Shown: positions 52,979-64,000, counted from the first letter of the stretch. The stretch: DNA of 64,000 bases from Rebecca billardiae RCC1528 (GCA_965240325.2 OZ251238.1:930001-994000); one strand, 5' to 3'. The notes: generated by a model from the letters alone, not told the origin. Translations and numbers: made by a program.

Positions 52979-55877
52979 ATGCCCGATCCACTGCCATCCT
53001 CAGCTGACGTCGGCGCGGAGATGCTGCCGGAGAAGCAGCGGAGCCTGGATGCCGCGCCGCGCGACGACGTGCCGCAGCCCGTGCTGCCGCCGCCGGGCGA
53101 CGACGAGCAGCGCATCGCCGAGCCGGACGGCATCGAGCCCGTCGGCGAAGAGGCCGCGCCCGCGCTGGAGGCGGGCGGCTGGGAGTACGCGCCCGCGGCC
53201 GAGGGCAACGCGCAGTTCGAGTCGTTCGTGGCGGCGCTCGAGGCGGTGGACGCGCTCAAGGCCACGGAGGCGCGGCAGGGGCAGGACGCCTTCGCCGCCA
53301 GCGACGAGATCGTGCTCGGCGAGGTCGACGCGCAGCTCGAGAACCGCGGCAGGGATGACGACGACGTCACGTCGAACGCGTCGTCCGATGCCCCGAACAT
53401 GGAGGACGTGGATGAGCCGAAGCGCTCGGCGGCGCAGCCGCGCACCTCGCGGCTGAGCAAAGCGCTCCCCATCCTCCGCAACAAGACCACCTCTGGCGAG
53501 TCCGAGGCGGACGGCTGGCTGACCAAGCTGCTCGTGGGAGCCGTCTGGCTGGTGAGGAAGGGCGCGGTGACGCTCTGGCGGGAGACGTCGCTGCTGCTCC
53601 TGCTCGTGCCGTACGCCATCGGCTTCCTCAGCCGCGAGGACGAGGAGCTCCGCCTGCGCGGCGACCTCTGGCTGCTGCGGCCGCTGTACGCGCTCGTGCT
53701 CGCGCGCCTGGCCGTGTTTGTTCTCTTTGCGATCAAGGGCGCGGCCGTCGCGCTCGAGCTGATGCCGGCGGCCATCATCCACTTCTTCGAGGCGTTCCGC
53801 GGCTGGCCAGCGACGGTGCGCCCGCTGCTGCCGCGCCCGCCGCCGCCGCGGGCACGCGCCGACGCACAGCGCTCCCGGCGTCGCGCGCCGCGCGCCGCGC
53901 GCACCCTCACGCGCCGCCGCGCGTCGCGCTCTCCGCCCGGCGGCGCGCCGCGCGCGCAGTGCCTCGCGTTCCTCGGCCTGCACGCCGTCTTCTACACCGT
54001 GCCGCACCAGGACCGCAACGCGTGGCAGCTGCTGCGCGGCGAGCAGTGGCTGATCGCGGTGCAGTGGTGGCTCGGCGCGCTCGGGCTGACGCGCGGGCTG
54101 CTCGAGGCGAGCTCGCAGCAGCTGTTCCGTGGCCTCAAGGACGGCCATTTTGAGCAGCGCGTCGCGGATGCGGTCATGTCGATGCGCGTGCTCCGGCTGG
54201 TGTTCGCCACGTCGCGCGCCGCGCGCAACCGCGCAGCGCAGCGCGAGCGCGAGCTCGAGGACGCGGAGACGCACGCCGCCCCCGAGCCGCCGGCTGTCTC
54301 ACTGCTGGACGAGGTGCCGCCGGCCGAGCTGACGGGAGAGCTGCCGCCTGCGCGCGTCGCGGACGGCGCCGGGCTGTCCTCCGCCGCGCTCGTGCGCGCC
54401 ACCTCCGGCCGCGCCGAGAGTGAGCTGATGGTCCGCGACGACGGGCTGCTCAAGGGCTGGCTCCTCGGCTCGATCACCGAGCAGCTCGCGGCGCTGCAGG
54501 AGGCGGTGGCGGCGGGCTCGGGCTTTGTCACCTCAAGCCACGACGCGCGGCGCCGCGCGCGCCACGCGTTCAAGGCGCTGCACGCCGAGTTCCGTCACGA
54601 GGTGGTGCACGGCCGCTCGATGGGCTCGGACCCGCTGCTCGACGCGGAGGACGTGCCGGAGGACTGCCTGCCGCGCGAGCGCGTCGTGCGCTGGTGCGTC
54701 AAGGCGACGCGGCGCAAGCGGCCGGCGTTCCGCAAGAAGATCGCGGAGCGCGTCGAGGCGCTGTTCCCGACGGCACAGCTCGACCAGGACGCGTTCGTCG
54801 CGGCCGTCGAGGCGGCGTACCGCGAGCAGCGCTTCCTGAGCGCGAGCGTGCAGTCGTTCGACCACCTCAACTCGCACCTGCACAGCTTCTTCCTCGTGGT
54901 GTGGGGCATCGTGATGTTCATCGCAGGCATCTTCCTCGTCGACTGGGGCGTCGACTTCGACGCGTGGATCGTGCCGTTCTCGTCGTCGTCGCTCTCGCTC
55001 GCCTTCCTGCTCGGCCGCCTGCCGTACGAGACGGCCGCGGGCATCATCTACGTGCTGATCACGCGGCCGTACGACATCGGTGATCGCATCCTGATCACCA
55101 ACCCGGGCGTGGCCGGCGACAACTACGAGGGGCACACGGTGGCGCAGGTGCGCGGCGCGCGCGGCACGCGGCGCGGCAGCCGCGGCTCTGCGCTGCGCGC
55201 GCGCTCCGCCCCGTGGCCGTTGTCGCTCTCACACACACACCGCTCGCGCTCCGATCGCGCCCGCTGCGCGCGCGCGGCTGCGCTTGCTGCGCTCTCGGCC
55301 GCGGCCCGCCTTCCAGGTGGGCCTGCTGTCGACGCGGCTGGTGTCGTGGCAGGGCGAGCAGCACATGATACAGAACTTCACCGCGCGCAACCTCAACATT
55401 ATTAATTTGCACCGCTCCAACAACCCGACCCTCGTGATGCTCATCCAGGTGCCCGCCGGCACGCCCGGCGCGAAGATCTCGGAGATGCTCGACGCGCTGC
55501 GGCTCTTCGTGCAGCACGCGCCCGACGACTGGATCTCGATCAGCTCGTGCCCGATCAAGCGCGCGGACTACAAGGAGGGCGTGCTCGACGTGAAGATTGG
55601 GCTCAAGTCCGCCAAGCGGCGCATCGAGGACGGCCTCATCGAGCAGGCCAAGAACCGGCTGCTCATCTTTCTGCACGCGTACATGCAGTCCGCGGGCATC
55701 GAGTTCCAGAAGGTGCCCGGGCGCGTGGTGCTCACGCTCTCAGAGGAGGGCCTCGGCGGCAGTGGCGCGGAGATTGCGCCGAGCCGGCGGGAGAGCATGC
55801 GCTCGCAGATGGGCGCGGAGAGCGTGAAGAGCCCTGGGACGCCGCGGCTCTCGCTGGCGCGGCCCGTCCCATCGTAG
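52979..55877 (+). CDS. MscS-like (MSL) mechanosensitive ion channel; at least two introns
   Basis: Several TMs; IIYVLITRPYDIGDRILI...VAQ|VGLLSTRLVSWQGEQHMIQNFTARNLNIINLHRS matches the eukaryotic MscS core (F..HPFDVGDR...V..I.LLST......G......N..L....I.N..RS). Confidence 0.85.
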
Positions 55878-55952
55878 TCGCCGCGCACGGAGCCACCTGC
55901 TGCTGCCGTCACTTCTGCGCCGCTGACGACACATGAACGCAGTCGTATGATG

Positions 55953-55956
<4 letters not shown>

Positions 55957-56010
<54 letters not shown>
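55957..56010. repeat. (CT)n microsatellite, ~54 bp
   Basis: Read directly. Confidence 0.99.
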
Positions 56011-56014
<4 letters not shown>

Positions 56015-57258
56015 CTTGCCGAAATAATGACTCGGTTATTAATACTGTATCATACTAAAATTACTAATACAGCCGCCCTGCATGCGCCTGCTGCTCGCAT
56101 TAGTTACTACGGCTGATTAGTGACGATTTACTCGTCACAAACTCATCAGTTATAGATTCATTATCAGATATATAGTAATAATAATACTCACTTTATAAAT
56201 TACATATATATATAATTATCATCAATAACTTATATTTATTATATTACCGCGCTGTCAGAGCCGACCCCGTGAGGCTGAGTCACGGGCCCAGCCTCCACTG
56301 GCCGGCGGCGCGGACGAGCTGCATGATTGATGCGCGACTCGCGGATATATTCGATATATATCGAGTATATACTTTACTGGCGACAGACGAGTGACACGGC
56401 GGAGTATCGTGATGATAGTAGCGTAGCTTATTAGCCGTTGCTGTCGCAATGTTGCGGCGCGCAGGCGCAGCTGGCGCGCGTCGTCGTCATCTAGCTAGTT
56501 ACATATACTCGTGGGGTCAGAGCTCCGACCTGTGGCTGTTACACTCCCGGGTGCGCATGACACAATCATCTCCCGACGAAATCTCGAATAAATATGGAAT
56601 ATCTCCTCGGTGGTTTATATAACTGCTGTTCGATCAGGCTTAATTATAATTCCATCAGGATGTATAGAATCCGCCTGCGTGCCAATTTCAGACTGCCAAA
56701 ATGTGATCCAGCCGGTCCGATTCTGGTGCAATAAATAGCGGGATCACCTTGGAGATCGTGTATCTCCCGCCCTACTAATGTTGCTGAGATCGCGTCGAGA
56801 TTGAGGCGGTCGCATACATACTCCATTATTTTGTGCCTTTTTCCGCAAAACTTGTCAGCGGGAACCCAGGTCATTTCAGACGAATGGAGACGCATCCCGA
56901 AGTTTGACGAGGCCTCATCTCAAGACGACAGAAAGTTGCGTAGTGGGTTTTATTGGGCCACACACCCCACAGTGGGGCTCTGGCCCCTCTACTTTATTCT
57001 AGTCGTCATCGCGCGTCGGGCACCGGCTCGTCGCGTCATCATTGTCATTCACATTGTCGATCCGACCTCATCGCGCGCATCAACTACTAGTACTACTGCT
57101 ACAGCGTCGTATGACTAACTACTGCAACCACCGTAAGACTAAGACTACTAGCGCAGGTCTACATCGATCTATACTCTAAAGTGTCTACGGTGCTGATAGG
57201 ATCGACACTGTCGTCGTCAAGCGCGGCTGCTCACCTGCTCGACGACCCACGGTCTCGC

Positions 57259-59178
57259 CTATTCGTCGGCCCCGGGATGATCGACCTGCCGGAGGGCGAG
57301 AAGCAGGCGCGCGGCCGCCAACCTCTTCGCCTCCTTCTTCGTGCGGGCCGTCGCGCGCCCCTCCTCCCGACGCAGCTGCGACTCGTACACGAGTCGCACC
57401 TCATGCGCTGCGCTCGCACCGGCCGCAGGCGCGCTCGTCTCGTGCAGGTCGACCTTGGTCCACCGGCAGAAGAGCATGAGCGTGGCGAGCGCGCCGGCGG
57501 AGCTATCGGCGGGGCCGATGGCGGCGAGCTTGCGAAGCGCGGTCTGCTCGCGGGCCACCGCCGCCTTGCGGCCGGCCGCCACCGCAGCCGGGTCCCTTGT
57601 CCCGGCCGGCAGTGCAGCACGCGCGCGCGCGACCTCGACGGCGTGCGCTGCTGCCTCGTGCTCCATGTCAGCGAGCAGCGCGACCGGCCGGTCCTGCCTC
57701 TCGGCGAGCACGACGAAGCTACTGCCCGCCTGCCGCGCGCGCCCGCGGCCCTGCACGAACGAGACGGCGTGCTGCATGGGGTCGAAGCGGATCACGCAGT
57801 TCGCGGCGGGCACGTCCACACCCTCCTCGGCGGCGGAGGTCGCGATGAGCAGGTTGGTGGCGCCGCTCGAGAAGTCTGCAAGGCGCTGCGCCGCCTGTGC
57901 GCGCGAGACGGAGAGCGACGGCGTGGCAGGCGACGAGCTGGCGTACAGGCACGCGCTGCGCACGCGGCCGGCGAGGTCTGCGTCGGCGGCGATGACGTGC
58001 GCGAGGATGTGCGTCATGACGCGCTGCTGCACGAAGACGATCCCTCGAAAGGCGCGTGCGTCCTCGCCAATCTTGTCGAGCAGCACCTCGACCAGGTTGT
58101 CGAAACGCGCGTGCGAGGGCGCGGACGCGGCCCAGAACGCCCGCCTCGCCGCGAGCGCGCTGTGCGGCCAGCGTGCGGCCGCGGCAGCCGCCTCGTCGTC
58201 GAGGCCGTACATGCGGAGGAACTCGGTGGCCGCGTCCTCTGCCGCCTCCCAGCTGGTGACGAGCAGCCGCAGGGCCTCGTACCAGTGCTCCAGCTCCGCG
58301 CAACGCCCGCTGCGGGAGCCTAGCCGGCTGGCATACGCGCCCCACTCACGCACTGCCAGCCGCCGCAGCGCGGACTCGAACTCGGGCAGCTCCTCCTTCG
58401 CGGCCGCCTCGAGCGAGCGGACGACTGCGACAAGGCGCAAGGCGAATGCGCTCGCCTCGCCGGTGCGCACGCGCTCAAAGAAGGTCGCCTCCATCAGGTG
58501 CTGCGGCGGGCGCGTGGCGGTGCCGGCGTCGGCAGGCGCGGACCTCATCACGATGTCCGGCGTGCGCACCTCCGCCACAAGCCGCGTCGCGTGGTACCCG
58601 CCGGCGACGAGCTCCTCGCTGCTGGCGTGCTCCACAGCGTCGATGAGCAGGTCATCGCAGAGCTGGCGCACGGCGGCCTGCACCTTGCCCGCGCTGACGG
58701 CGTAGGTGAGCGAGGCGGTGAGGCCGAGGACGCGGGGCCGCGAGTCCGCGCGCTGCAGGGTCCTGGCGAGCTTGCGGTACGGGTGCTCCTTGAGCACGTG
58801 GTGCACCTCGTCGAACACCACGAGCCCGAACGAGCCCCAGCTGAGGCGCTCGTGCCGCGCCTGCGCCGCCTCGAACGCCTTGGGCGTCGCGACGAGGATG
58901 TCAAAGGCGGGCGCGAGAGACACGCCGCCCATGAACTCGGCGACGTCCATGCCACTCCACTCGCGGATGGCGGCAGCCTGCTGCGAGACGAGTAGGCACG
59001 TGGGCACCAGGAAAAGCGAGGGCCGCTCGCACTGCGCCGCGCACGCGGCGGCGATCAGCGTCTTGCCGGCGCCGGTGGGCAGCAGGACAATGGTGTTCTT
59101 CTCGACGGCGGTCTTGACGATGCGTTGCTGGTACGGGCGCAGCGCGGCCTTGGGCGCGATCCGTGAGTGGAGCGGCAT
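57259..59178 (-). CDS. Dicer/RIG-I-like DExD/H helicase with C-terminal dsRBD/DUF283-like domain; no PAZ or RNase III
   Basis: LRPYQ, NTIVLLPTGAGKTLIA, LVVFDEVHHVLKEHPY, LGLTAS, RGIVFVQQR, NLLIATSAAEEGVDVPAANCVIRFD, SFVQGRGRAR; C-terminal GALATLMLFC...ARTKKEAKRLAAARLLLAL; intronless, 639 aa. Confidence 0.9.
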   Translation of the reverse strand: MPLHSRIAPKAALRPYQQRIVKTAVEKNTIVLLPTGAGKTLIAAACAAQCERPSLFLVPTCLLVSQQAAAIREWSGMDVAEFMGGVSLAPAFDILVATPKAFEAAQARHERLSWGSFGLVVFDEVHHVLKEHPYRKLARTLQRADSRPRVLGLTASLTYAVSAGKVQAAVRQLCDDLLIDAVEHASSEELVAGGYHATRLVAEVRTPDIVMRSAPADAGTATRPPQHLMEATFFERVRTGEASAFALRLVAVVRSLEAAAKEELPEFESALRRLAVREWGAYASRLGSRSGRCAELEHWYEALRLLVTSWEAAEDAATEFLRMYGLDDEAAAAAARWPHSALAARRAFWAASAPSHARFDNLVEVLLDKIGEDARAFRGIVFVQQRVMTHILAHVIAADADLAGRVRSACLYASSSPATPSLSVSRAQAAQRLADFSSGATNLLIATSAAEEGVDVPAANCVIRFDPMQHAVSFVQGRGRARQAGSSFVVLAERQDRPVALLADMEHEAAAHAVEVARARAALPAGTRDPAAVAAGRKAAVAREQTALRKLAAIGPADSSAGALATLMLFCRWTKVDLHETSAPAAGASAAHEVRLVYESQLRREEGRATARTKKEAKRLAAARLLLALRQVDHPGADE

Positions 59179-59379
59179 GGACGGTCAAGTGCGAGTCAGG
59201 GTCAAGAGTGGTCAACGTCTCGTGTGTGATCGACTTGAGACTGATCGTGACCCGGATTCCTCCGGCAGGGGCAGGTGGGGGCGAGTGGTGACCCACCGGG
59301 CGGTCGCTCCGCACTGGCGACCCCCCATTATTTTGATCTTCTGGCGGGAACTTGGAGAACAGGTCAACAGGACAGCCAG

Positions 59380-60324
59380 ATGGCGGCCGACCCGCTCACA
59401 CGTCTGCTCGAGGCAGCTGACAAGACGATCCTCAGCGTGGGCTCGGGCGACGGCTCGCAGCAGGCTGCCATCGTCGCTCGCGGGCACCGCAACGTGACCA
59501 CCACCTTCTTCGACTCTCGAGCAGCGCTGCTCGCCAAGTACCCACAGTCGGCACCGGCCAGCCTGCGCGTGCTCGAGGGCGCCGCGCGTCCGCCTCTCTT
59601 CGAGGTCGACGCGACCAATCTGCAGTCGTACGGGCTTGGCATGTTCGACATCTGCATCTTCTCCTTCCCGCACACGGGCGTGCCCAATAACGATCCCAAC
59701 AACGTCGCTTCGAACCGCGCGCTGCTCACCGGCTTTTTGCGCTCGGTGCAGCACGTGCTTAAGCCTGACGGACAGGTGCAGATCACACTCAAGACGGGCG
59801 AGCCGTACGATCGATGGGAGCTGCCCAGGCTCTTGAGTGACGAGTGCGACCTTCACTTGACCTCGACGCACCCGCTCGACAAGTCGCAGTTCACCGGCTA
59901 TGTGCACCGCCTCACCGTCGGCGCGACCGGCAAGATGACGCAGGTGCGCGACAAGGGCGCCAAGGTCTACTCCTTCGAGCGGCGCCAGCCCGCCAACGCC
60001 GAGCCGACTGTCGCGCAGCTGCCGCTCTCGACGTCCGCGTCCGTCGTCATCGTCGCGCTGCTGCACGCGGCCCTCAGCTATGCTGAAGTCGAGACAATGA
60101 TCGGCGAGGTCCTTCACGCGGCACGTGGCGAGGCTGAGAGTCTGAGCGTGCTCGACATTCGCAGGCGGGCGGCGGGCAGGTGCAAGATCGCCTGCGCCAC
60201 ACTGCCTGACACGCGTCAGATGAACCGGGTGCTGTACGCGATGGAGCACAAGGGCTGTGCATGCCGAGGGGGCTCCCGGGCGGGTCGCGGGATGAAGCCG
60301 GCCTGGATGGCACCCGCCGAGTGA
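59380..60324 (+). CDS. DUF2431/Bmt5-like SAM-dependent RNA methyltransferase fused to a C-terminal Z-alpha winged-helix domain
   Basis: ILSVGSGDGS, LLAKYP, FEVDATNL, FDICIFSFPHTG, NRALLTGFLRS, ITLKTGEPYDRW (DUF2431); C-terminal TRQMNRVLYAMEHKG...KPAW (compare ADAR1 Z-alpha KKEINRVLYSLAKKG...PPLW); intronless. Confidence 0.8.
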   Translation: MAADPLTRLLEAADKTILSVGSGDGSQQAAIVARGHRNVTTTFFDSRAALLAKYPQSAPASLRVLEGAARPPLFEVDATNLQSYGLGMFDICIFSFPHTGVPNNDPNNVASNRALLTGFLRSVQHVLKPDGQVQITLKTGEPYDRWELPRLLSDECDLHLTSTHPLDKSQFTGYVHRLTVGATGKMTQVRDKGAKVYSFERRQPANAEPTVAQLPLSTSASVVIVALLHAALSYAEVETMIGEVLHAARGEAESLSVLDIRRRAAGRCKIACATLPDTRQMNRVLYAMEHKGCACRGGSRAGRGMKPAWMAPAE

Positions 60325-61153
60325 CCGGGCCTCGTTCGTCGTTGGCGACGTGCGGCAGGAGACTGACCCTGACGGGCAGTCCGAGTGGAGCGTACAACAC
60401 GCTTGGCCGGGTGAGCGTGACGTGGAGCCGGCTCTAGCTAGATGAGGCGTACAGTGCATATATGCGCAGATATATGTATGGTATGGTAGCCTCTTACTTC
60501 ACTCCGCCCGACTACAGCAGCCGCATGCGGTGACGGCGGTCCGCCGGTCATCCCGGGGACGGTCGTATCCAGATCTGCCCATCACAGCAGTCACACAGTG
60601 ATCACCGTGCCAGGCGTGCCATGACTCATGACTGCCCCGAGTCAGCAGCGCCGCACGCCCGCAGCATATCAACTGACTGATTGCTGCGGCTGATATCAGA
60701 TGCGACGAGCTGACCGCCTCGGTGATAACGATCATCAGTTGTGCTGATGATGATTATTATCAGCCTGATATGATATGACGAATGTCGTATGATGATGACG
60801 ACGGAGATGACGATCGATGTATATGATGGCGCACGCATATCCTGCTCGACGACCTCGGCCAAGTAGCCATAGTGCCCGCGGCCGGCGCCAGGCGATTGCG
60901 CTGTCGATCGAGCGCCACGTTGCGTGCCGTTATTATTCGTTATGACGACTATACTGAATGAATAATAAGACTCACTACGAGACTACCAAGTCACGCATGA
61001 TCGACTCATCCGAGCAGTCGTCAGTCGTGCCCTGCATATAAATCCGCCGGACGCGCGGGACGAATGCCTGGCGAGTGAGACAGCGGCACAGGCGACTGTG
61101 CCGGACTGTCCGGCGCCTACGTACATCCGATCGGAAGCACGGAGGCGCTGTGC

Positions 61154-62890
61154 TCAAACGCGGGGCAGCGGCACAGACGGCTCGTCGAGCTGCGGGCAGC
61201 GGCTCCGCTGCCGTCGGTGCCACGCCGCCAGATGCGTCGCGTTGAGAGAAGGCGGCGGGCTGTGCTCAAACGTGGGGCAGCGGCACAGGCGGCTCGCGCG
61301 CGAGGAGAACGTGGAGCCCTTCGTGCCGACGAAGAGAGCGGCGTGCGCGATCAGCTCGCCCTCGACCAGCGACACGAGCTTGGCCCAGGCGAGCTCAGCC
61401 AGGTCTGAGAAGCCGAGCTTGGTGGGTGCGCGCTTGGTGGGTGCGCCAATGTCAAGCGGCCGGCGCGCGGCGGGGGGGGCATGGCGCGCGAGGCGCGGAG
61501 CAGCAGCCGCGCGAGCCGCCGCCTCGACATCCGCCCAGAAGCGCGTGCGTTGCACGATGCCCCCCGGCCACGCAGCCCCCGCGCCACCCGTGACGCCGTT
61601 CGGCGGTGCGAACCAGCCGGTGGGCGCGTCGGTCGCGACGTAGAGCGATCGGCGCGCTGGCGCCGCGGCCGCGCCCGCGCGGGCTGCCGCGGCCGGGGCG
61701 GCGTGCGCGACTGGTGAGGCCAACGGCTCGCACTCGAGAATGTCGAGCACGCGGCGCGCGAGCGCGTCGGGCGTGTCGCTCGCGTCGTACAGGTCGAACT
61801 CGCGCGTGCGGTAGTGCAGCGCGGCGTATGCGCGCGGCCCTCCGAGCGCGCCGGCCGCCGCGCGCCACGCATGCTCAATGGGAGCGCTCGGTCGCACGCC
61901 CGCTTCGAGAGCGGAGCGGATGCGCATGAACTCGTGCGCTCGCCGGTCGACGGCGCAGTCAAGCAGCCGGGGGTACTCCCAGCCCTTCATCAAAAAGTTC
62001 GCGTCCATCGGCCAGTACTGCACCTTCGCCTCGATCGCGCGCAGCACAGCCTCGTCGTCGCCCCCTTTGGTCGGCTTGGCGCGCGGCCGTGCGAACGCAG
62101 CGGACGGCGCGTCCGCAGCGCGCGCACGGCCGAGCAGCTGCCGGCGCAACCGCACGTAGTCGCTGAGCCAGGCGGAGGTCTCGGCGCCGGCGAGGCGGAG
62201 GCGCTTCGGCAGCCGCTTGCCGAGCGGGCAGTCCCGCCGATGCGGCACCCAGAAGTGCTCGCGCGCCCACTGGCCCAGGTCCGGCTCGGCAGCGCCGCCC
62301 CGCGCCGCGCGGAGGCCGCGCGCCGTCGCGCACAGCTGGACGGCTCGCCTGCTCCAGTAGCGCGGGCGCGAGGCGTTGATGTGCTTGCTCCGGTACAAGT
62401 TGCCCAGCCGGCGCGACTGCCGCTGCATCGACTCGCACTCCGAGCGCACCATCAGCCGCGCCTCGTCCACGCCCGCCGCCCACGGCAGCCTGAGGCTCGC
62501 CGACTCGGCGCGCAGGAAGTTCTGGAAGCTGAGCACGCGCACGTGCGCGCGCAGCGAGCAGTCGGCGCCGCCGAGCGCCCAGTAGTCCTCGATGCGAGAG
62601 ACCGAGACGGGCATGCGCATGGCGCCCGACCGGTCGTCCAGCGGCGAGTTCGGGCCCCAGTCCTTCATCCAGACCGCGCCCGCCGGCGGCAGCACCAGCG
62701 TTCGGCCGGTCACGCACGCCATCTCTGCGGCGTAGAGCATGCCGTCGTAGACGTTGGTCAGCGCCCCGTGGTCGAGTTCGAAGAGGAGGTACTGCCCGGG
62801 CGCCTCAGGCTCGCATGGCGACTCACCAGACGCGAGGACGCTCAGAGCCACAAGGAGCACAAGGGCGCGCGCGCCGTACGCCGCCATCAT
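61154..62890 (-). CDS. GDP-fucose O-fucosyltransferase-like (POFUT/GT-B) secreted or Golgi protein
   Basis: Signal peptide; YLLFELDHGALTNV, GRTLVLPP, YAALHYRTREF, LYVATD, LVEGELIAHAALFVGTKGSTFS. Confidence 0.8.
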   Translation of the reverse strand: MMAAYGARALVLLVALSVLASGESPCEPEAPGQYLLFELDHGALTNVYDGMLYAAEMACVTGRTLVLPPAGAVWMKDWGPNSPLDDRSGAMRMPVSVSRIEDYWALGGADCSLRAHVRVLSFQNFLRAESASLRLPWAAGVDEARLMVRSECESMQRQSRRLGNLYRSKHINASRPRYWSRRAVQLCATARGLRAARGGAAEPDLGQWAREHFWVPHRRDCPLGKRLPKRLRLAGAETSAWLSDYVRLRRQLLGRARAADAPSAAFARPRAKPTKGGDDEAVLRAIEAKVQYWPMDANFLMKGWEYPRLLDCAVDRRAHEFMRIRSALEAGVRPSAPIEHAWRAAAGALGGPRAYAALHYRTREFDLYDASDTPDALARRVLDILECEPLASPVAHAAPAAAARAGAAAAPARRSLYVATDAPTGWFAPPNGVTGGAGAAWPGGIVQRTRFWADVEAAARAAAAPRLARHAPPAARRPLDIGAPTKRAPTKLGFSDLAELAWAKLVSLVEGELIAHAALFVGTKGSTFSSRASRLCRCPTFEHSPPPSLNATHLAAWHRRQRSRCPQLDEPSVPLPRV

Positions 62891-63010
62891 GGACCTCCGC
62901 ACCTTTTCTCGCCGCCGAGTTTTGGTGACTTTGGTCCGCCCGAGCGTCGGACTTTCATCGCGCGACGAAAGATTTTTGCCTGCGGGGAAGCCTCCATCGT
63001 GTCCTCGTCG

Positions 63011-63592
63011 ATGACGATGACGAGCAGGCGACGCGCTAGCCGCGTCGTCGGCGCGCTGATGCTGGCGGCGGCGGGCGCGTGCCGCGCTCAGGCGCCGCCG
63101 GGGAGCGCAGGCGCGGCGTACGCGCGGTCCACGCCGGCCACACCCGCCGCCGGCCCATTCGCGCAGCTGCTCAAAGCGCGCAGGCTGCTCTCGCCGCCGT
63201 GCGTCGGCTGCGTGACGCAGTGCGCGACCGCGACGGCGTCCGAGACGTTCAGCCAGCCGGCCATGCGCGCGGTGGGCATGTTCGCATTCCGCCACCTCTT
63301 CTGGAACGAGGCGAAGGAGTGCGCCGAGTTCGGTGAGGGCCTCGCCCTCGTCTTCCGCAACCTGCGGCTGTGGCACTTGGCGGCGGTGTTTGCAAACTTC
63401 TATTCGCAGTGCGTCGACGCGTGCTACCGGCAGTGCCCGTACTGGGGCGTGCGCGCGAAGCGCGCGGCTCGGCTGCTCGCGGCGGAGGAGCAGTCGCACG
63501 ACTGGGCGTACAAGATCGGCCCGAGCTACGCGTGGGAGGAGCGGTTTGCCGAGCAGAAGCTCGGCGAGGTGCGCTCTCGGGCGCACGCCTGA
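63011..63592 (+). CDS. Hypothetical Cys-containing secreted protein
   Basis: Signal-like VVGALMLAAAGACRA; non-low-complexity, aromatic-rich body; divergent from the fucosyltransferase across 120 bp. Confidence 0.55.
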   Translation: MTMTSRRRASRVVGALMLAAAGACRAQAPPGSAGAAYARSTPATPAAGPFAQLLKARRLLSPPCVGCVTQCATATASETFSQPAMRAVGMFAFRHLFWNEAKECAEFGEGLALVFRNLRLWHLAAVFANFYSQCVDACYRQCPYWGVRAKRAARLLAAEEQSHDWAYKIGPSYAWEERFAEQKLGEVRSRAHA

Positions 63593-64000
63593 TGCACAGA
63601 GCCGGCTGGCTGCCCATCGCCCCACGGAGGGGTCCTGCGCATCCGCACGACGGCCCAGGCAGCATCGAGAACGGGCCCTTTGGGCAGCCGCAGCCGCACG
63701 GCGTGGACCTTGCGCTCGCGGATCTTGATCCACCAATCCCTTACTTACCGCTGCGGCATATCTCCGATCAACTGCATTTACAACTTCAGCAGCAGCAGCC
63801 TTCTGCTCGCCGCCAGCACCGCCTGGCAGGCGCCCGCAGGCGCGGCGCGACGGACCTGCTTTGCGGCGCATGGCCGCCCATCGAGCTGCACCCGGGACGG
63901 GCAGACGGCGACATGCTGGCTGCTGCGCGGGTAGTCCGCTTCCACGCGACTGCGGGGGGTCGTCTCCGACGACGACTCGTCCTCGCGACTCGATGCCAGC

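Follow-up and report, generated by a model that had tools for sequence, protein, structure and literature searches.

To our knowledge, nearly all that is known of the Z-alpha domain comes from the vertebrate proteins ADAR1, ZBP1 and PKZ and from the viral antagonists of these proteins. Only these three were counted as eukaryotic Z-alpha proteins in a 2023 review (PMC10523160), and surveys beyond the metazoa (Romero 2024, PMC11298590; Herbert 2024, PMC11293857) describe Z-alpha-type folds that keep the contact asparagine and tyrosine in phytoplankton and Symbiodiniaceae, with p15/PC4 and acetate-CoA ligase as partners. The word methyltransferase is absent from both surveys, and a helicase-Z-alpha fusion appears in neither. 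Here we describe two divergent genes at positions 57259-60324 of a 64,000-nucleotide stretch of DNA (the window) from the haptophyte Rebecca billardiae RCC1528 (GCA_965240325.2 OZ251238.1:930001-994000). One is assigned to a helicase of the Dicer/RIG-I clade that ends in a domain for binding double-stranded RNA (dsRBD), and the other to a BMT5-like methyltransferase whose C-terminal domain we assign to the Z-alpha family. All component domains come from known families. What the locus adds is a Z-alpha domain, complete in its contact signature, on a new class of RNA-modifying enzyme, found across haptophytes, diatoms and pelagophytes, and the genomic linkage of that enzyme to a helicase of the Dicer and RIG-I-like receptor (RLR) type in two phyla; proteins of environmental eukaryotes add fusions of Z-alpha to Dicer/RLR-type helicases, to RNase III and to caspase-like proteases.

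Several described systems resemble parts of this locus. ADAR1 p150, which carries Z-alpha, Z-beta, dsRBDs and an adenosine deaminase, likewise joins a Z-alpha domain with the Asn, Tyr and Trp contacts to an RNA base-modifying enzyme. Here the enzyme is an S-adenosylmethionine (SAM)-dependent, BMT5-like methyltransferase rather than a deaminase, there is a single, C-terminal Z-alpha, the dsRBD lies on the neighboring helicase rather than on the same chain, and the lineage is algal rather than metazoan. The N-terminal module of Dicer (AncD1D2, Dcr-2, DCL4) is the best sequence and structure match to the helicase and has the same domain order and nearly the same length (639 versus 652 residues), but the helicase is a separate gene that ends after its dsRBD, without PAZ or RNase III. 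RIG-I, MDA5, LGP2 and the nematode DRH-1 share its duplex-RNA-activated superfamily 2 (SF2) fold with a Hel2i insertion and a pincer; unlike the RLRs, it has neither CARDs nor a zinc-binding C-terminal regulatory domain, and the dsRBD stands in place of the latter. A Thalassiosira pseudonana protein with the same composition, DEADc/HELICc and a C-terminal dsRBD (De Riso 2009, Maumus 2011), has been speculated to belong to the RNA interference (RNAi) machinery (PMC3145265). That report called the composition unique to the diatom, whereas we find hundreds of members across algal lineages, and it mentions no link to a Z-alpha methyltransferase. Finally, yeast Bmt5/DUF2431, the 25S rRNA m3U2634 methyltransferase, shares PF10354 over the whole catalytic domain, with GSGDGS and FPHTG kept. 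Fungal BMT5-like proteins are only about 31% identical to the window enzyme, over about half its length, so the algal clade is not a simple Bmt5 orthologue, and the Z-alpha domain is an addition. In the full-text literature searched, the coverage of which is incomplete, we found no description of a BMT5/DUF2431-Z-alpha fusion, of its linkage to a Dicer-type helicase or of helicase-Z-alpha fusions; a preliminary description of the window, made from its sequence alone, had likewise known of no account of the combination.

Gene structure and domains of the two products

The pair consists of two divergent intronless open reading frames (ORFs) separated by a 201-bp spacer from ATG to ATG. The features below were placed by sequence scans, by Pfam, by alignment to the ancestral Dicer helicase AncD1D2 and from AlphaFold2 (AF2) models.

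57259-59178, minus strand: helicase gene, an ORF of 639 residues with its ATG at 59178
58585-59142, minus strand: Hel1 RecA domain, residues 13-198, with PTGAGKT, DEVHH and TAS motifs (AncD1D2 alignment, invariant columns)
58126-58503, minus strand: Hel2i-like all-helical insertion between the RecA domains, residues 226-351 (AF2 model, full-length Foldseek matches)
57709-58110, minus strand: Hel2 RecA domain, residues 357-490, with ATSAAEEGVD and QGRGRAR motifs (Pfam, AncD1D2 alignment, AF2 model)
57517-57684, minus strand: pincer-like pair of long helices, residues 499-554 (499-521 and 530-554; AF2 model)
57289-57501, minus strand: C-terminal dsRBD, residues 560-630, with KKEAKRLAA, at the position of Dicer DUF283 (AF2 model, family profile)
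59179-59379, no strand: spacer between the start codons, 201 bp, presumed bidirectional promoter and 5' untranslated regions
59183-59215, plus strand: three GGTCAA repeats, at 59183, 59200 and 59210 (sequence scan)
59362-59367, plus strand: fourth GGTCAA repeat, 13-18 bp upstream of the methyltransferase ATG
59380-60324, plus strand: methyltransferase-Z-alpha gene, an ORF of 314 residues from its first ATG at 59380, with its stop at 60324
59431-59910, plus strand: BMT5-like (DUF2431) class I SAM methyltransferase domain, residues 18-177 (Pfam PF10354)
60079-60309, plus strand: Z-alpha winged helix, residues 234-310, with recognition helix TRQMNRVLYAM and wing KPAW

Alignments of both proteins to their homologues run end to end with no internal gaps, and both genes are therefore taken to be complete and intronless, as the preliminary description had stated. 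The reading frame of the methyltransferase-Z-alpha gene is already open from a GTG at 59275, ahead of the ATG. GC content is 0.64-0.77 within the genes. It is lower beyond the helicase stop (0.34-0.58 at 55950-57150) and downstream of the methyltransferase (0.51-0.62 at 60300-61050); the lower-GC flanks noted earlier are thus present on both sides.

Pfam identified ResIII, DEAD and Helicase_C in the helicase protein. When it was searched against PDB sequences with phmmer, AncD1D2 came first (1.4e-36), ahead of plant DCL1, LGP2, animal Dicers, DCL4, DRH-1, MDA5 and RIG-I, and the motifs PTGAGKT, DEVHH, TAS and QGRGRAR are invariant across 49 homologues. The AF2 model built from these homologues has a predicted local distance difference test score (pLDDT) of 92 and a predicted template modeling score (pTM) of 0.90, and it places Hel1 at residues 15-192. 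Its best Foldseek matches were Dicer helicase, LGP2/MDA5, DRH-1, DCL4, Dcr-2 and RIG-I, with E-values of 1e-24 to 1e-22 against the RLRs and DRH-1 over about 560-600 aligned columns. Pfam, phmmer, model and Foldseek agree on the duplex-RNA-activated type that had been suggested for this protein. The dsRBD has the α-β-β-β-α topology in the model (helix 560-574, strands 578-584, 592-599 and 604-611, helix 614-630). Apart from dsRBD proteins, namely R2D2 (5.8e-9), Staufen, Loqs (Loquacious) and TRBP, a family profile from 43 homologues matches only the DUF283 region of AncD1D2 (residues 549-631), and 35 of the 43 members match Pfam dsrm (best 1.4e-9) and 19 match Dicer_dimer; the earlier dsRBD call was borne out by this profile, by the relatives' Pfam matches and by the predicted fold. 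Pfam found no PAZ or RNase III in the protein, which stops at residue 639 after the dsRBD, and Pfam, profile and model showed no CARDs and no RLR C-terminal regulatory domain, with Hel1 at the N-terminus and the dsRBD at the C-terminus. With the domain order Hel1, Hel2i, Hel2, pincer and dsRBD, it thus corresponds to Dicer's N-terminal half standing on its own. On sequence and model, the product is a Dicer/RIG-I-clade DExH helicase with a terminal dsRBD, and, if it behaves as the analogous Dicer helicases, LGP2 and DRH-1 do, it would be expected to bind A-form double-stranded RNA (dsRNA) and translocate on it. Its family has hundreds of members in haptophytes, dinoflagellates (Symbiodinium, Polykrikos, Prorocentrum), diatoms (Chaetoceros, Corethron) and brown, red and green algae, as well as in Mesostigma.

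The methyltransferase domain matches PF10354 with an E-value of 5.2e-31 and 108.6 bits (cut-off 24.7), which confirms the RNA methyltransferase fold proposed earlier, and the SAM motif GSGDGSQQ (core GSGDGS) and FPHTG are invariant in the alignment. A search with the whole protein returned 96 homologues, most of about 300-350 residues and covering about 97% of the query, and the fusion of methyltransferase and Z-alpha is kept in about 90 proteins of haptophytes, diatoms and pelagophytes. Named sources are Pavlovales sp. CCMP2436, Thalassiosira exigua, Mediolabrus comicus, Amphora coffeaeformis and Pelagophyceae sp. CCMP2097. A search of the ESM Atlas returned BMT5-like clusters alone, below 0.9, and the fungal, plant and bacterial clusters there lack Z-alpha. 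Two members of the family (P0269 and P0312) have two stretches each that match the Z-alpha profile after the BMT5-like domain, and in another (P0228) prenyltransferase alpha repeats are attached, perhaps through a merged gene model. The preliminary description had pointed to giant-virus genomes, among others, as a place to look for adjacency or fusion of the two genes. The viral contigs of IMG/VR hold neither family: no methyltransferase-Z-alpha relative was found there, and on the helicase side there were only remote SF2 helicases, at no more than 41% identity over short stretches and mostly at 25-34% over Hel1. A giant-virus origin of the pair was dropped.

Assignment of the C-terminal domain to the Z-alpha family

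Among 39 aligned homologues, the C-terminal 85 or so residues of the methyltransferase are strongly conserved around VLxIRR...PDTRQLNRVLYxME...KPxW. The invariant residues are L258, R261, P276, R279, N282, R283, Y286, K306 and P307, and more than 90% of the sequences have W309. The ADAR1 contact residues N173, R174, Y177, P193 and W195 align to N282, R283, Y286, P307 and W309, and the recognition-helix core NRVLY is the same as in ADAR1; two ADAR1 contact positions are altered (K169 to T278 and P192 to K306), and K170 corresponds to R279. When a profile of the domain was compared with the PDB, 19 of the 21 matches belonged to the Z-alpha/Z-beta family, with PKZ the best (0.0064, over the whole domain) and with ADAR1 Z-alpha and Z-beta, ZBP1, ORF112 and an E3L chimera also matched; the weakest matches include the Tn7 TnsA endonuclease (0.7) and ribosomal protein S30 (2-3). 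Pfam z-alpha is found below threshold in 29 of 35 members of the methyltransferase family, and no other family recurs.

The AF2 model of the domain (pLDDT 85) has the α1-β1-α2-α3-β2-β3 topology. The top five Foldseek matches are ADAR1 Z-beta, ADAR1 Z-alpha, I73R of African swine fever virus (ASFV), ADAR1 Z-alpha on Z-DNA and PKZ, with template modeling scores normalized to the target of 0.6-0.8; Fur, MarR and other winged helices are found at E-values similar to those of the Z-alpha matches. Relatives of the same Z-alpha subfamily score above the Pfam threshold (P0234 at 31.5 bits, P0335 at 35.3 and P0310 at 61.5, with P0280 also above it). As far as its sequence signature and predicted fold go, we accept the domain as a Z-alpha, so that the earlier call is upheld by contact residues, profile, model and Foldseek, and binding of the left-handed Z form by the methyltransferase's Z-alpha would be expected.

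Recurrence of the pair and Z-alpha fusions elsewhere

The two genes also stand head to head outside the window. At a locus of Pavlovales sp. CCMP2436 (L005), a methyltransferase-Z-alpha gene diverges across a 629-bp spacer from a helicase orthologue that has introns and is 65% identical over Hel1, with matches spanning residues 13-606. A tblastx comparison of L005 with positions 40-64 kb of the window found no shared genes beyond the pair. On two diatom-type lake-metagenome contigs (L027 and L028) and a Logan contig (L121), a divergent helicase start, which reads MAI.SLR.YQSRIV...LPTGAGKT, lies 125-126 bp upstream of the methyltransferase start (125 bp in L028 and 126 bp in L121). In the methyltransferase tree the proteins of the diatom-type pairs (P0086 and P0083) group with those of Thalassiosira exigua and Mediolabrus comicus in a well-supported clade, far from the clade of the window and Pavlovales. 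Because the window methyltransferase groups with that of Pavlovales sp. CCMP2436 (support 91/81), this comparison may span less than a class-level split, and the deep comparison for linkage is that with the diatom loci. Since the window, L005 and the three diatom-type contigs fall in two separate clades, the pair is present in at least three species groups of two phyla. It is very unlikely that the same two families were juxtaposed twice by chance; what remains is that the linkage was ancestral and was lost many times, that the pair was gained repeatedly or that the two genes were transferred jointly. At the Pavlovales locus a second RNA methyltransferase-type gene (Pfam Methyltrn_RNA_2; L005 13376-15173) lies about 4 kb downstream of the pair, and tblastx found no counterpart of it in the window.

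The window spacer contains four plus-strand copies of GGTCAA, whereas any other 201-bp stretch of the 64-kb window has at most one; the Poisson probability of such a cluster is about 1e-7 per 201-bp window, or about 4e-5 when corrected for the number of windows. The Pavlovales spacer contains four copies within 37 bp (L005 7754-7790), in the same orientation relative to the genes. The reverse complement of the repeat, TTGACC, is the core of the plant W-box, a likeness on which we base no functional claim. In the diatom-type spacers (L028 172-296 and L121 186-311) a palindrome-like GTGAAATTTTCAC element, unlike GGTCAA, occurs two or three times, and no motif common to all the pair spacers was found, the GGTCAA clusters being confined to the two haptophyte spacers.

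An exhaustive profile search of 1.84 billion proteins identified 141 with this Z-alpha subfamily, several of which join it to enzymes of dsRNA metabolism. P0234, a single ORF on an ENA contig, consists of a Dicer/RLR-type helicase followed by two Z-alpha domains (profile E-value 3.3e-22), and its helicase matches DCL4 (1.4e-33) and AncD1D2 (1.5e-31) in the PDB. Its nearest helicase-dsRBD relative (P0346) is 44% identical and has a dsRBD in place of the Z-alpha domains. In P0349, a Z-alpha that scores above threshold (40 bits), a helicase and a dsRBD lie on one chain. Other members combine Z-alpha with RNase III (P0327), with a caspase (C14) domain (P0335) or with a CHAT domain (P0251). Through these fusions Z-alpha is connected with helicases of this class, with dsRNA enzymes and with effector enzymes; between methyltransferase and helicase they provide no direct connection. 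Together the partners look like an immune toolkit of microbial eukaryotes. Sel1 repeats are also found among the partners in the set made up of P0234, P0349, P0327, P0335, P0251 and P0280.

Proposed pathway, its alternatives and the surrounding DNA

We tentatively favor the reading that the locus is a conserved divergent pair whose products each carry a module for reading double-helical nucleic acid and probably act in one duplex-RNA pathway, and our confidence in it falls just short of halfway. In such a pathway the shared short promoter region would express both genes together; searches for public sequencing runs, of RNA over 57100-60500 and of any kind over the methyltransferase gene, listed none. 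The helicase-dsRBD protein would engage ordinary A-form dsRNA and translocate on it, while the Z-alpha domain would dock the methyltransferase on segments of duplex RNA, or DNA, that have flipped to the left-handed Z form. Such Z-prone segments may be promoted by torsion that the helicase generates, as in a published model for MDA5 in which RLR-helicase torsion induces Z-RNA that is then read by Z-alpha (as cited in PMC11293857). The BMT5-like enzyme would methylate bases near the docking site and so mark the RNA. The likeliest substrates would be long dsRNA from viruses, transposons or antisense transcription, in a silencing or defense-like pathway in which the two proteins would cooperate.

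A number of observations weigh against this reading. Characterized BMT5 is a housekeeping rRNA enzyme. The window's own copies of both nucleic acid-binding domains score below their Pfam cut-offs, the dsRBD at 17 bits (cut-off 23) and the Z-alpha at 12.4-14.6 bits (gathering cut-off 21). The helicase is missing from 14 or more methyltransferase loci whose upstream DNA extends for 1 kb or longer (L006, L011, L013, L015, L016, L017, L021, L022, L025, L026, L030, L037, L039 and L040), which include Thalassiosira exigua (L040), Pelagophyceae CCMP2097 and several long diatom-type contigs. Helicase loci in turn lack the methyltransferase (L001-L004, L034, L035 and L036; at least three helicase loci with DNA), and the closest helicase homologue, which is 61% identical (L001-L004), diverges from a glycosyltransferase-like gene. 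For the contigs of P0101, P0136 and P0234 the unlinked status was judged from gene calls only. The helicase family is also far more widely spread: among the hits, no methyltransferase-Z-alpha was seen in dinoflagellates, brown and red algae or Mesostigma, in which the helicase occurs, and the helicase therefore works without a methyltransferase partner there. Moreover, the known fusions join the helicase to Z-alpha and none joins it to the methyltransferase. Linkage is thus patchy, is absent at most informative loci and is not general among taxa that have both genes. The preliminary description had looked to conserved linkage, and to adjacency or fusion in other genomes, as a check on its proposal; head-to-head pairs in Pavlovales sp. 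CCMP2436 and two diatom-type species and the helicase-Z-alpha fusions bear it out in part, while the many unlinked loci and the lack of any helicase-methyltransferase fusion among the proteins found do not.

It is possible, if doubtful, that the two genes function independently of each other and have no more than a promoter region in common, the helicase being a "split Dicer" RNAi cofactor for Dicers that consist of RNase III only, and the methyltransferase a housekeeping enzyme for rRNA or non-coding RNA (m3U-type, as in yeast Bmt5) that docks by its Z-alpha on Z-prone rRNA helices, with an old adjacency kept by promoter sharing. PF10354 is indeed named for the 25S rRNA U-N3 methyltransferase, ADAR1 Z-alpha has been reported to recognize segments of ribosomal RNA (Nichols 2021, as cited in PMC11293857), the T. 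pseudonana helicase-dsRBD protein was speculatively tied to RNAi in diatoms without a canonical Dicer (PMC3145265), and the two genes are unlinked in most lineages, the helicase being far more widely spread than the methyltransferase. Such independence sits less well with a head-to-head pair that recurs in two distant phyla amid unrelated flanks, with the GGTCAA cluster common to both haptophyte spacers, with the repeated fusion of this type of helicase to Z-alpha and with the low, half-length identity of the methyltransferase to its fungal counterparts.

The remaining alternatives concern what the Z-alpha domain reads. That it reads Z-DNA behind RNA polymerase rather than Z-RNA, with the methyltransferase modifying DNA or nascent RNA at transcribed chromatin and the helicase handling R-loops or nascent duplexes, would fit the binding of Z-DNA as well as Z-RNA by Z-alpha domains, the link of algal Z-alpha-like folds to p15/PC4-family transcription factors (PMC11293857, PMC11298590) and a coding GC content that favors alternating CG tracts. 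We nevertheless consider it improbable, given a catalytic domain from an RNA methyltransferase family, a partner helicase of the duplex-RNA-activated clade with a dsRBD, and the other partners of the subfamily (RNase III, Dicer/RLR-type helicases), which act on RNA. Least credible, and to be given hardly any weight, is that the adjacency is meaningless and the domain a generic winged helix that does not bind the Z form. All Pfam z-alpha matches in the methyltransferase family fall under the gathering score, Fur, MarR and others reach similar Foldseek E-values, and head-to-head pairs are common in compact genomes. Set against this, the ADAR1-equivalent contacts vary hardly or not at all (among the 39 aligned sequences, and among 35 in a domain-only alignment), the great majority of PDB profile matches and all of the top five Foldseek matches are of the Z-alpha family, the domain relatives P0234, P0335 and P0310 clear the Pfam threshold, and the pair is found at at least four loci in two phyla.

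Returning to the reading of one duplex-RNA pathway, the co-regulated algal sense-and-modify pair of the preliminary description is left partly standing: recurrent linkage, the haptophyte GGTCAA clusters and the helicase-Z-alpha fusions speak for it, and the patchiness of the linkage and the broader distribution of the helicase against it. We consider it plausible that the pair is co-regulated and serves one duplex-RNA pathway; an antiviral sense-and-modify system is speculation. Were the pair functional, joint recognition of A-form and Z-form duplexes would reach back much further, and extend much more widely, than the innate immunity of animals, and the widespread helicase-dsRBD protein known from T. 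pseudonana since 2009-2011 would gain its first candidate partner; the reading of the Z form may be tied to dsRNA machinery well outside animals. Bloom-forming algae of these groups suffer heavy infection by both giant viruses and RNA viruses, which in that case would make them an experimental entry point. A wider proposal, which we regard as unlikely, is that these proteins represent an ancient, pre-animal system of eukaryotic nucleic-acid immunity in which Z-RNA recognition is wired to Dicer/RIG-I-type helicases in marine algae: the helicase would find or twist long dsRNA, the Z-alpha-guided methyltransferase would mark it as foreign, self or transposon-derived, and sister architectures with RNase III and caspase-like proteases would serve as cleavage and cell-death arms.

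The pair is flanked in the window by two long ORFs, at 52979-55877 (plus strand) and 61154-63871 (minus strand), which have no significant Pfam family, only a weak O-FucT match (E-value 0.005), and no counterpart at the Pavlovales locus. A Pfam search of the neighboring ORFs found no match to RNAi-related families, and many of the overlapping long ORFs in the GC-rich DNA of the window are probably spurious. Within the helicase gene and the adjoining spacer, a 29-nt inverted repeat has arms at 58944-58972 and 59155-59183 that are 90% complementary and separated by 182 nt. One arm spans the start codon at 59178 and the other lies in the coding sequence, and the helicase mRNA could therefore fold back over its own start.

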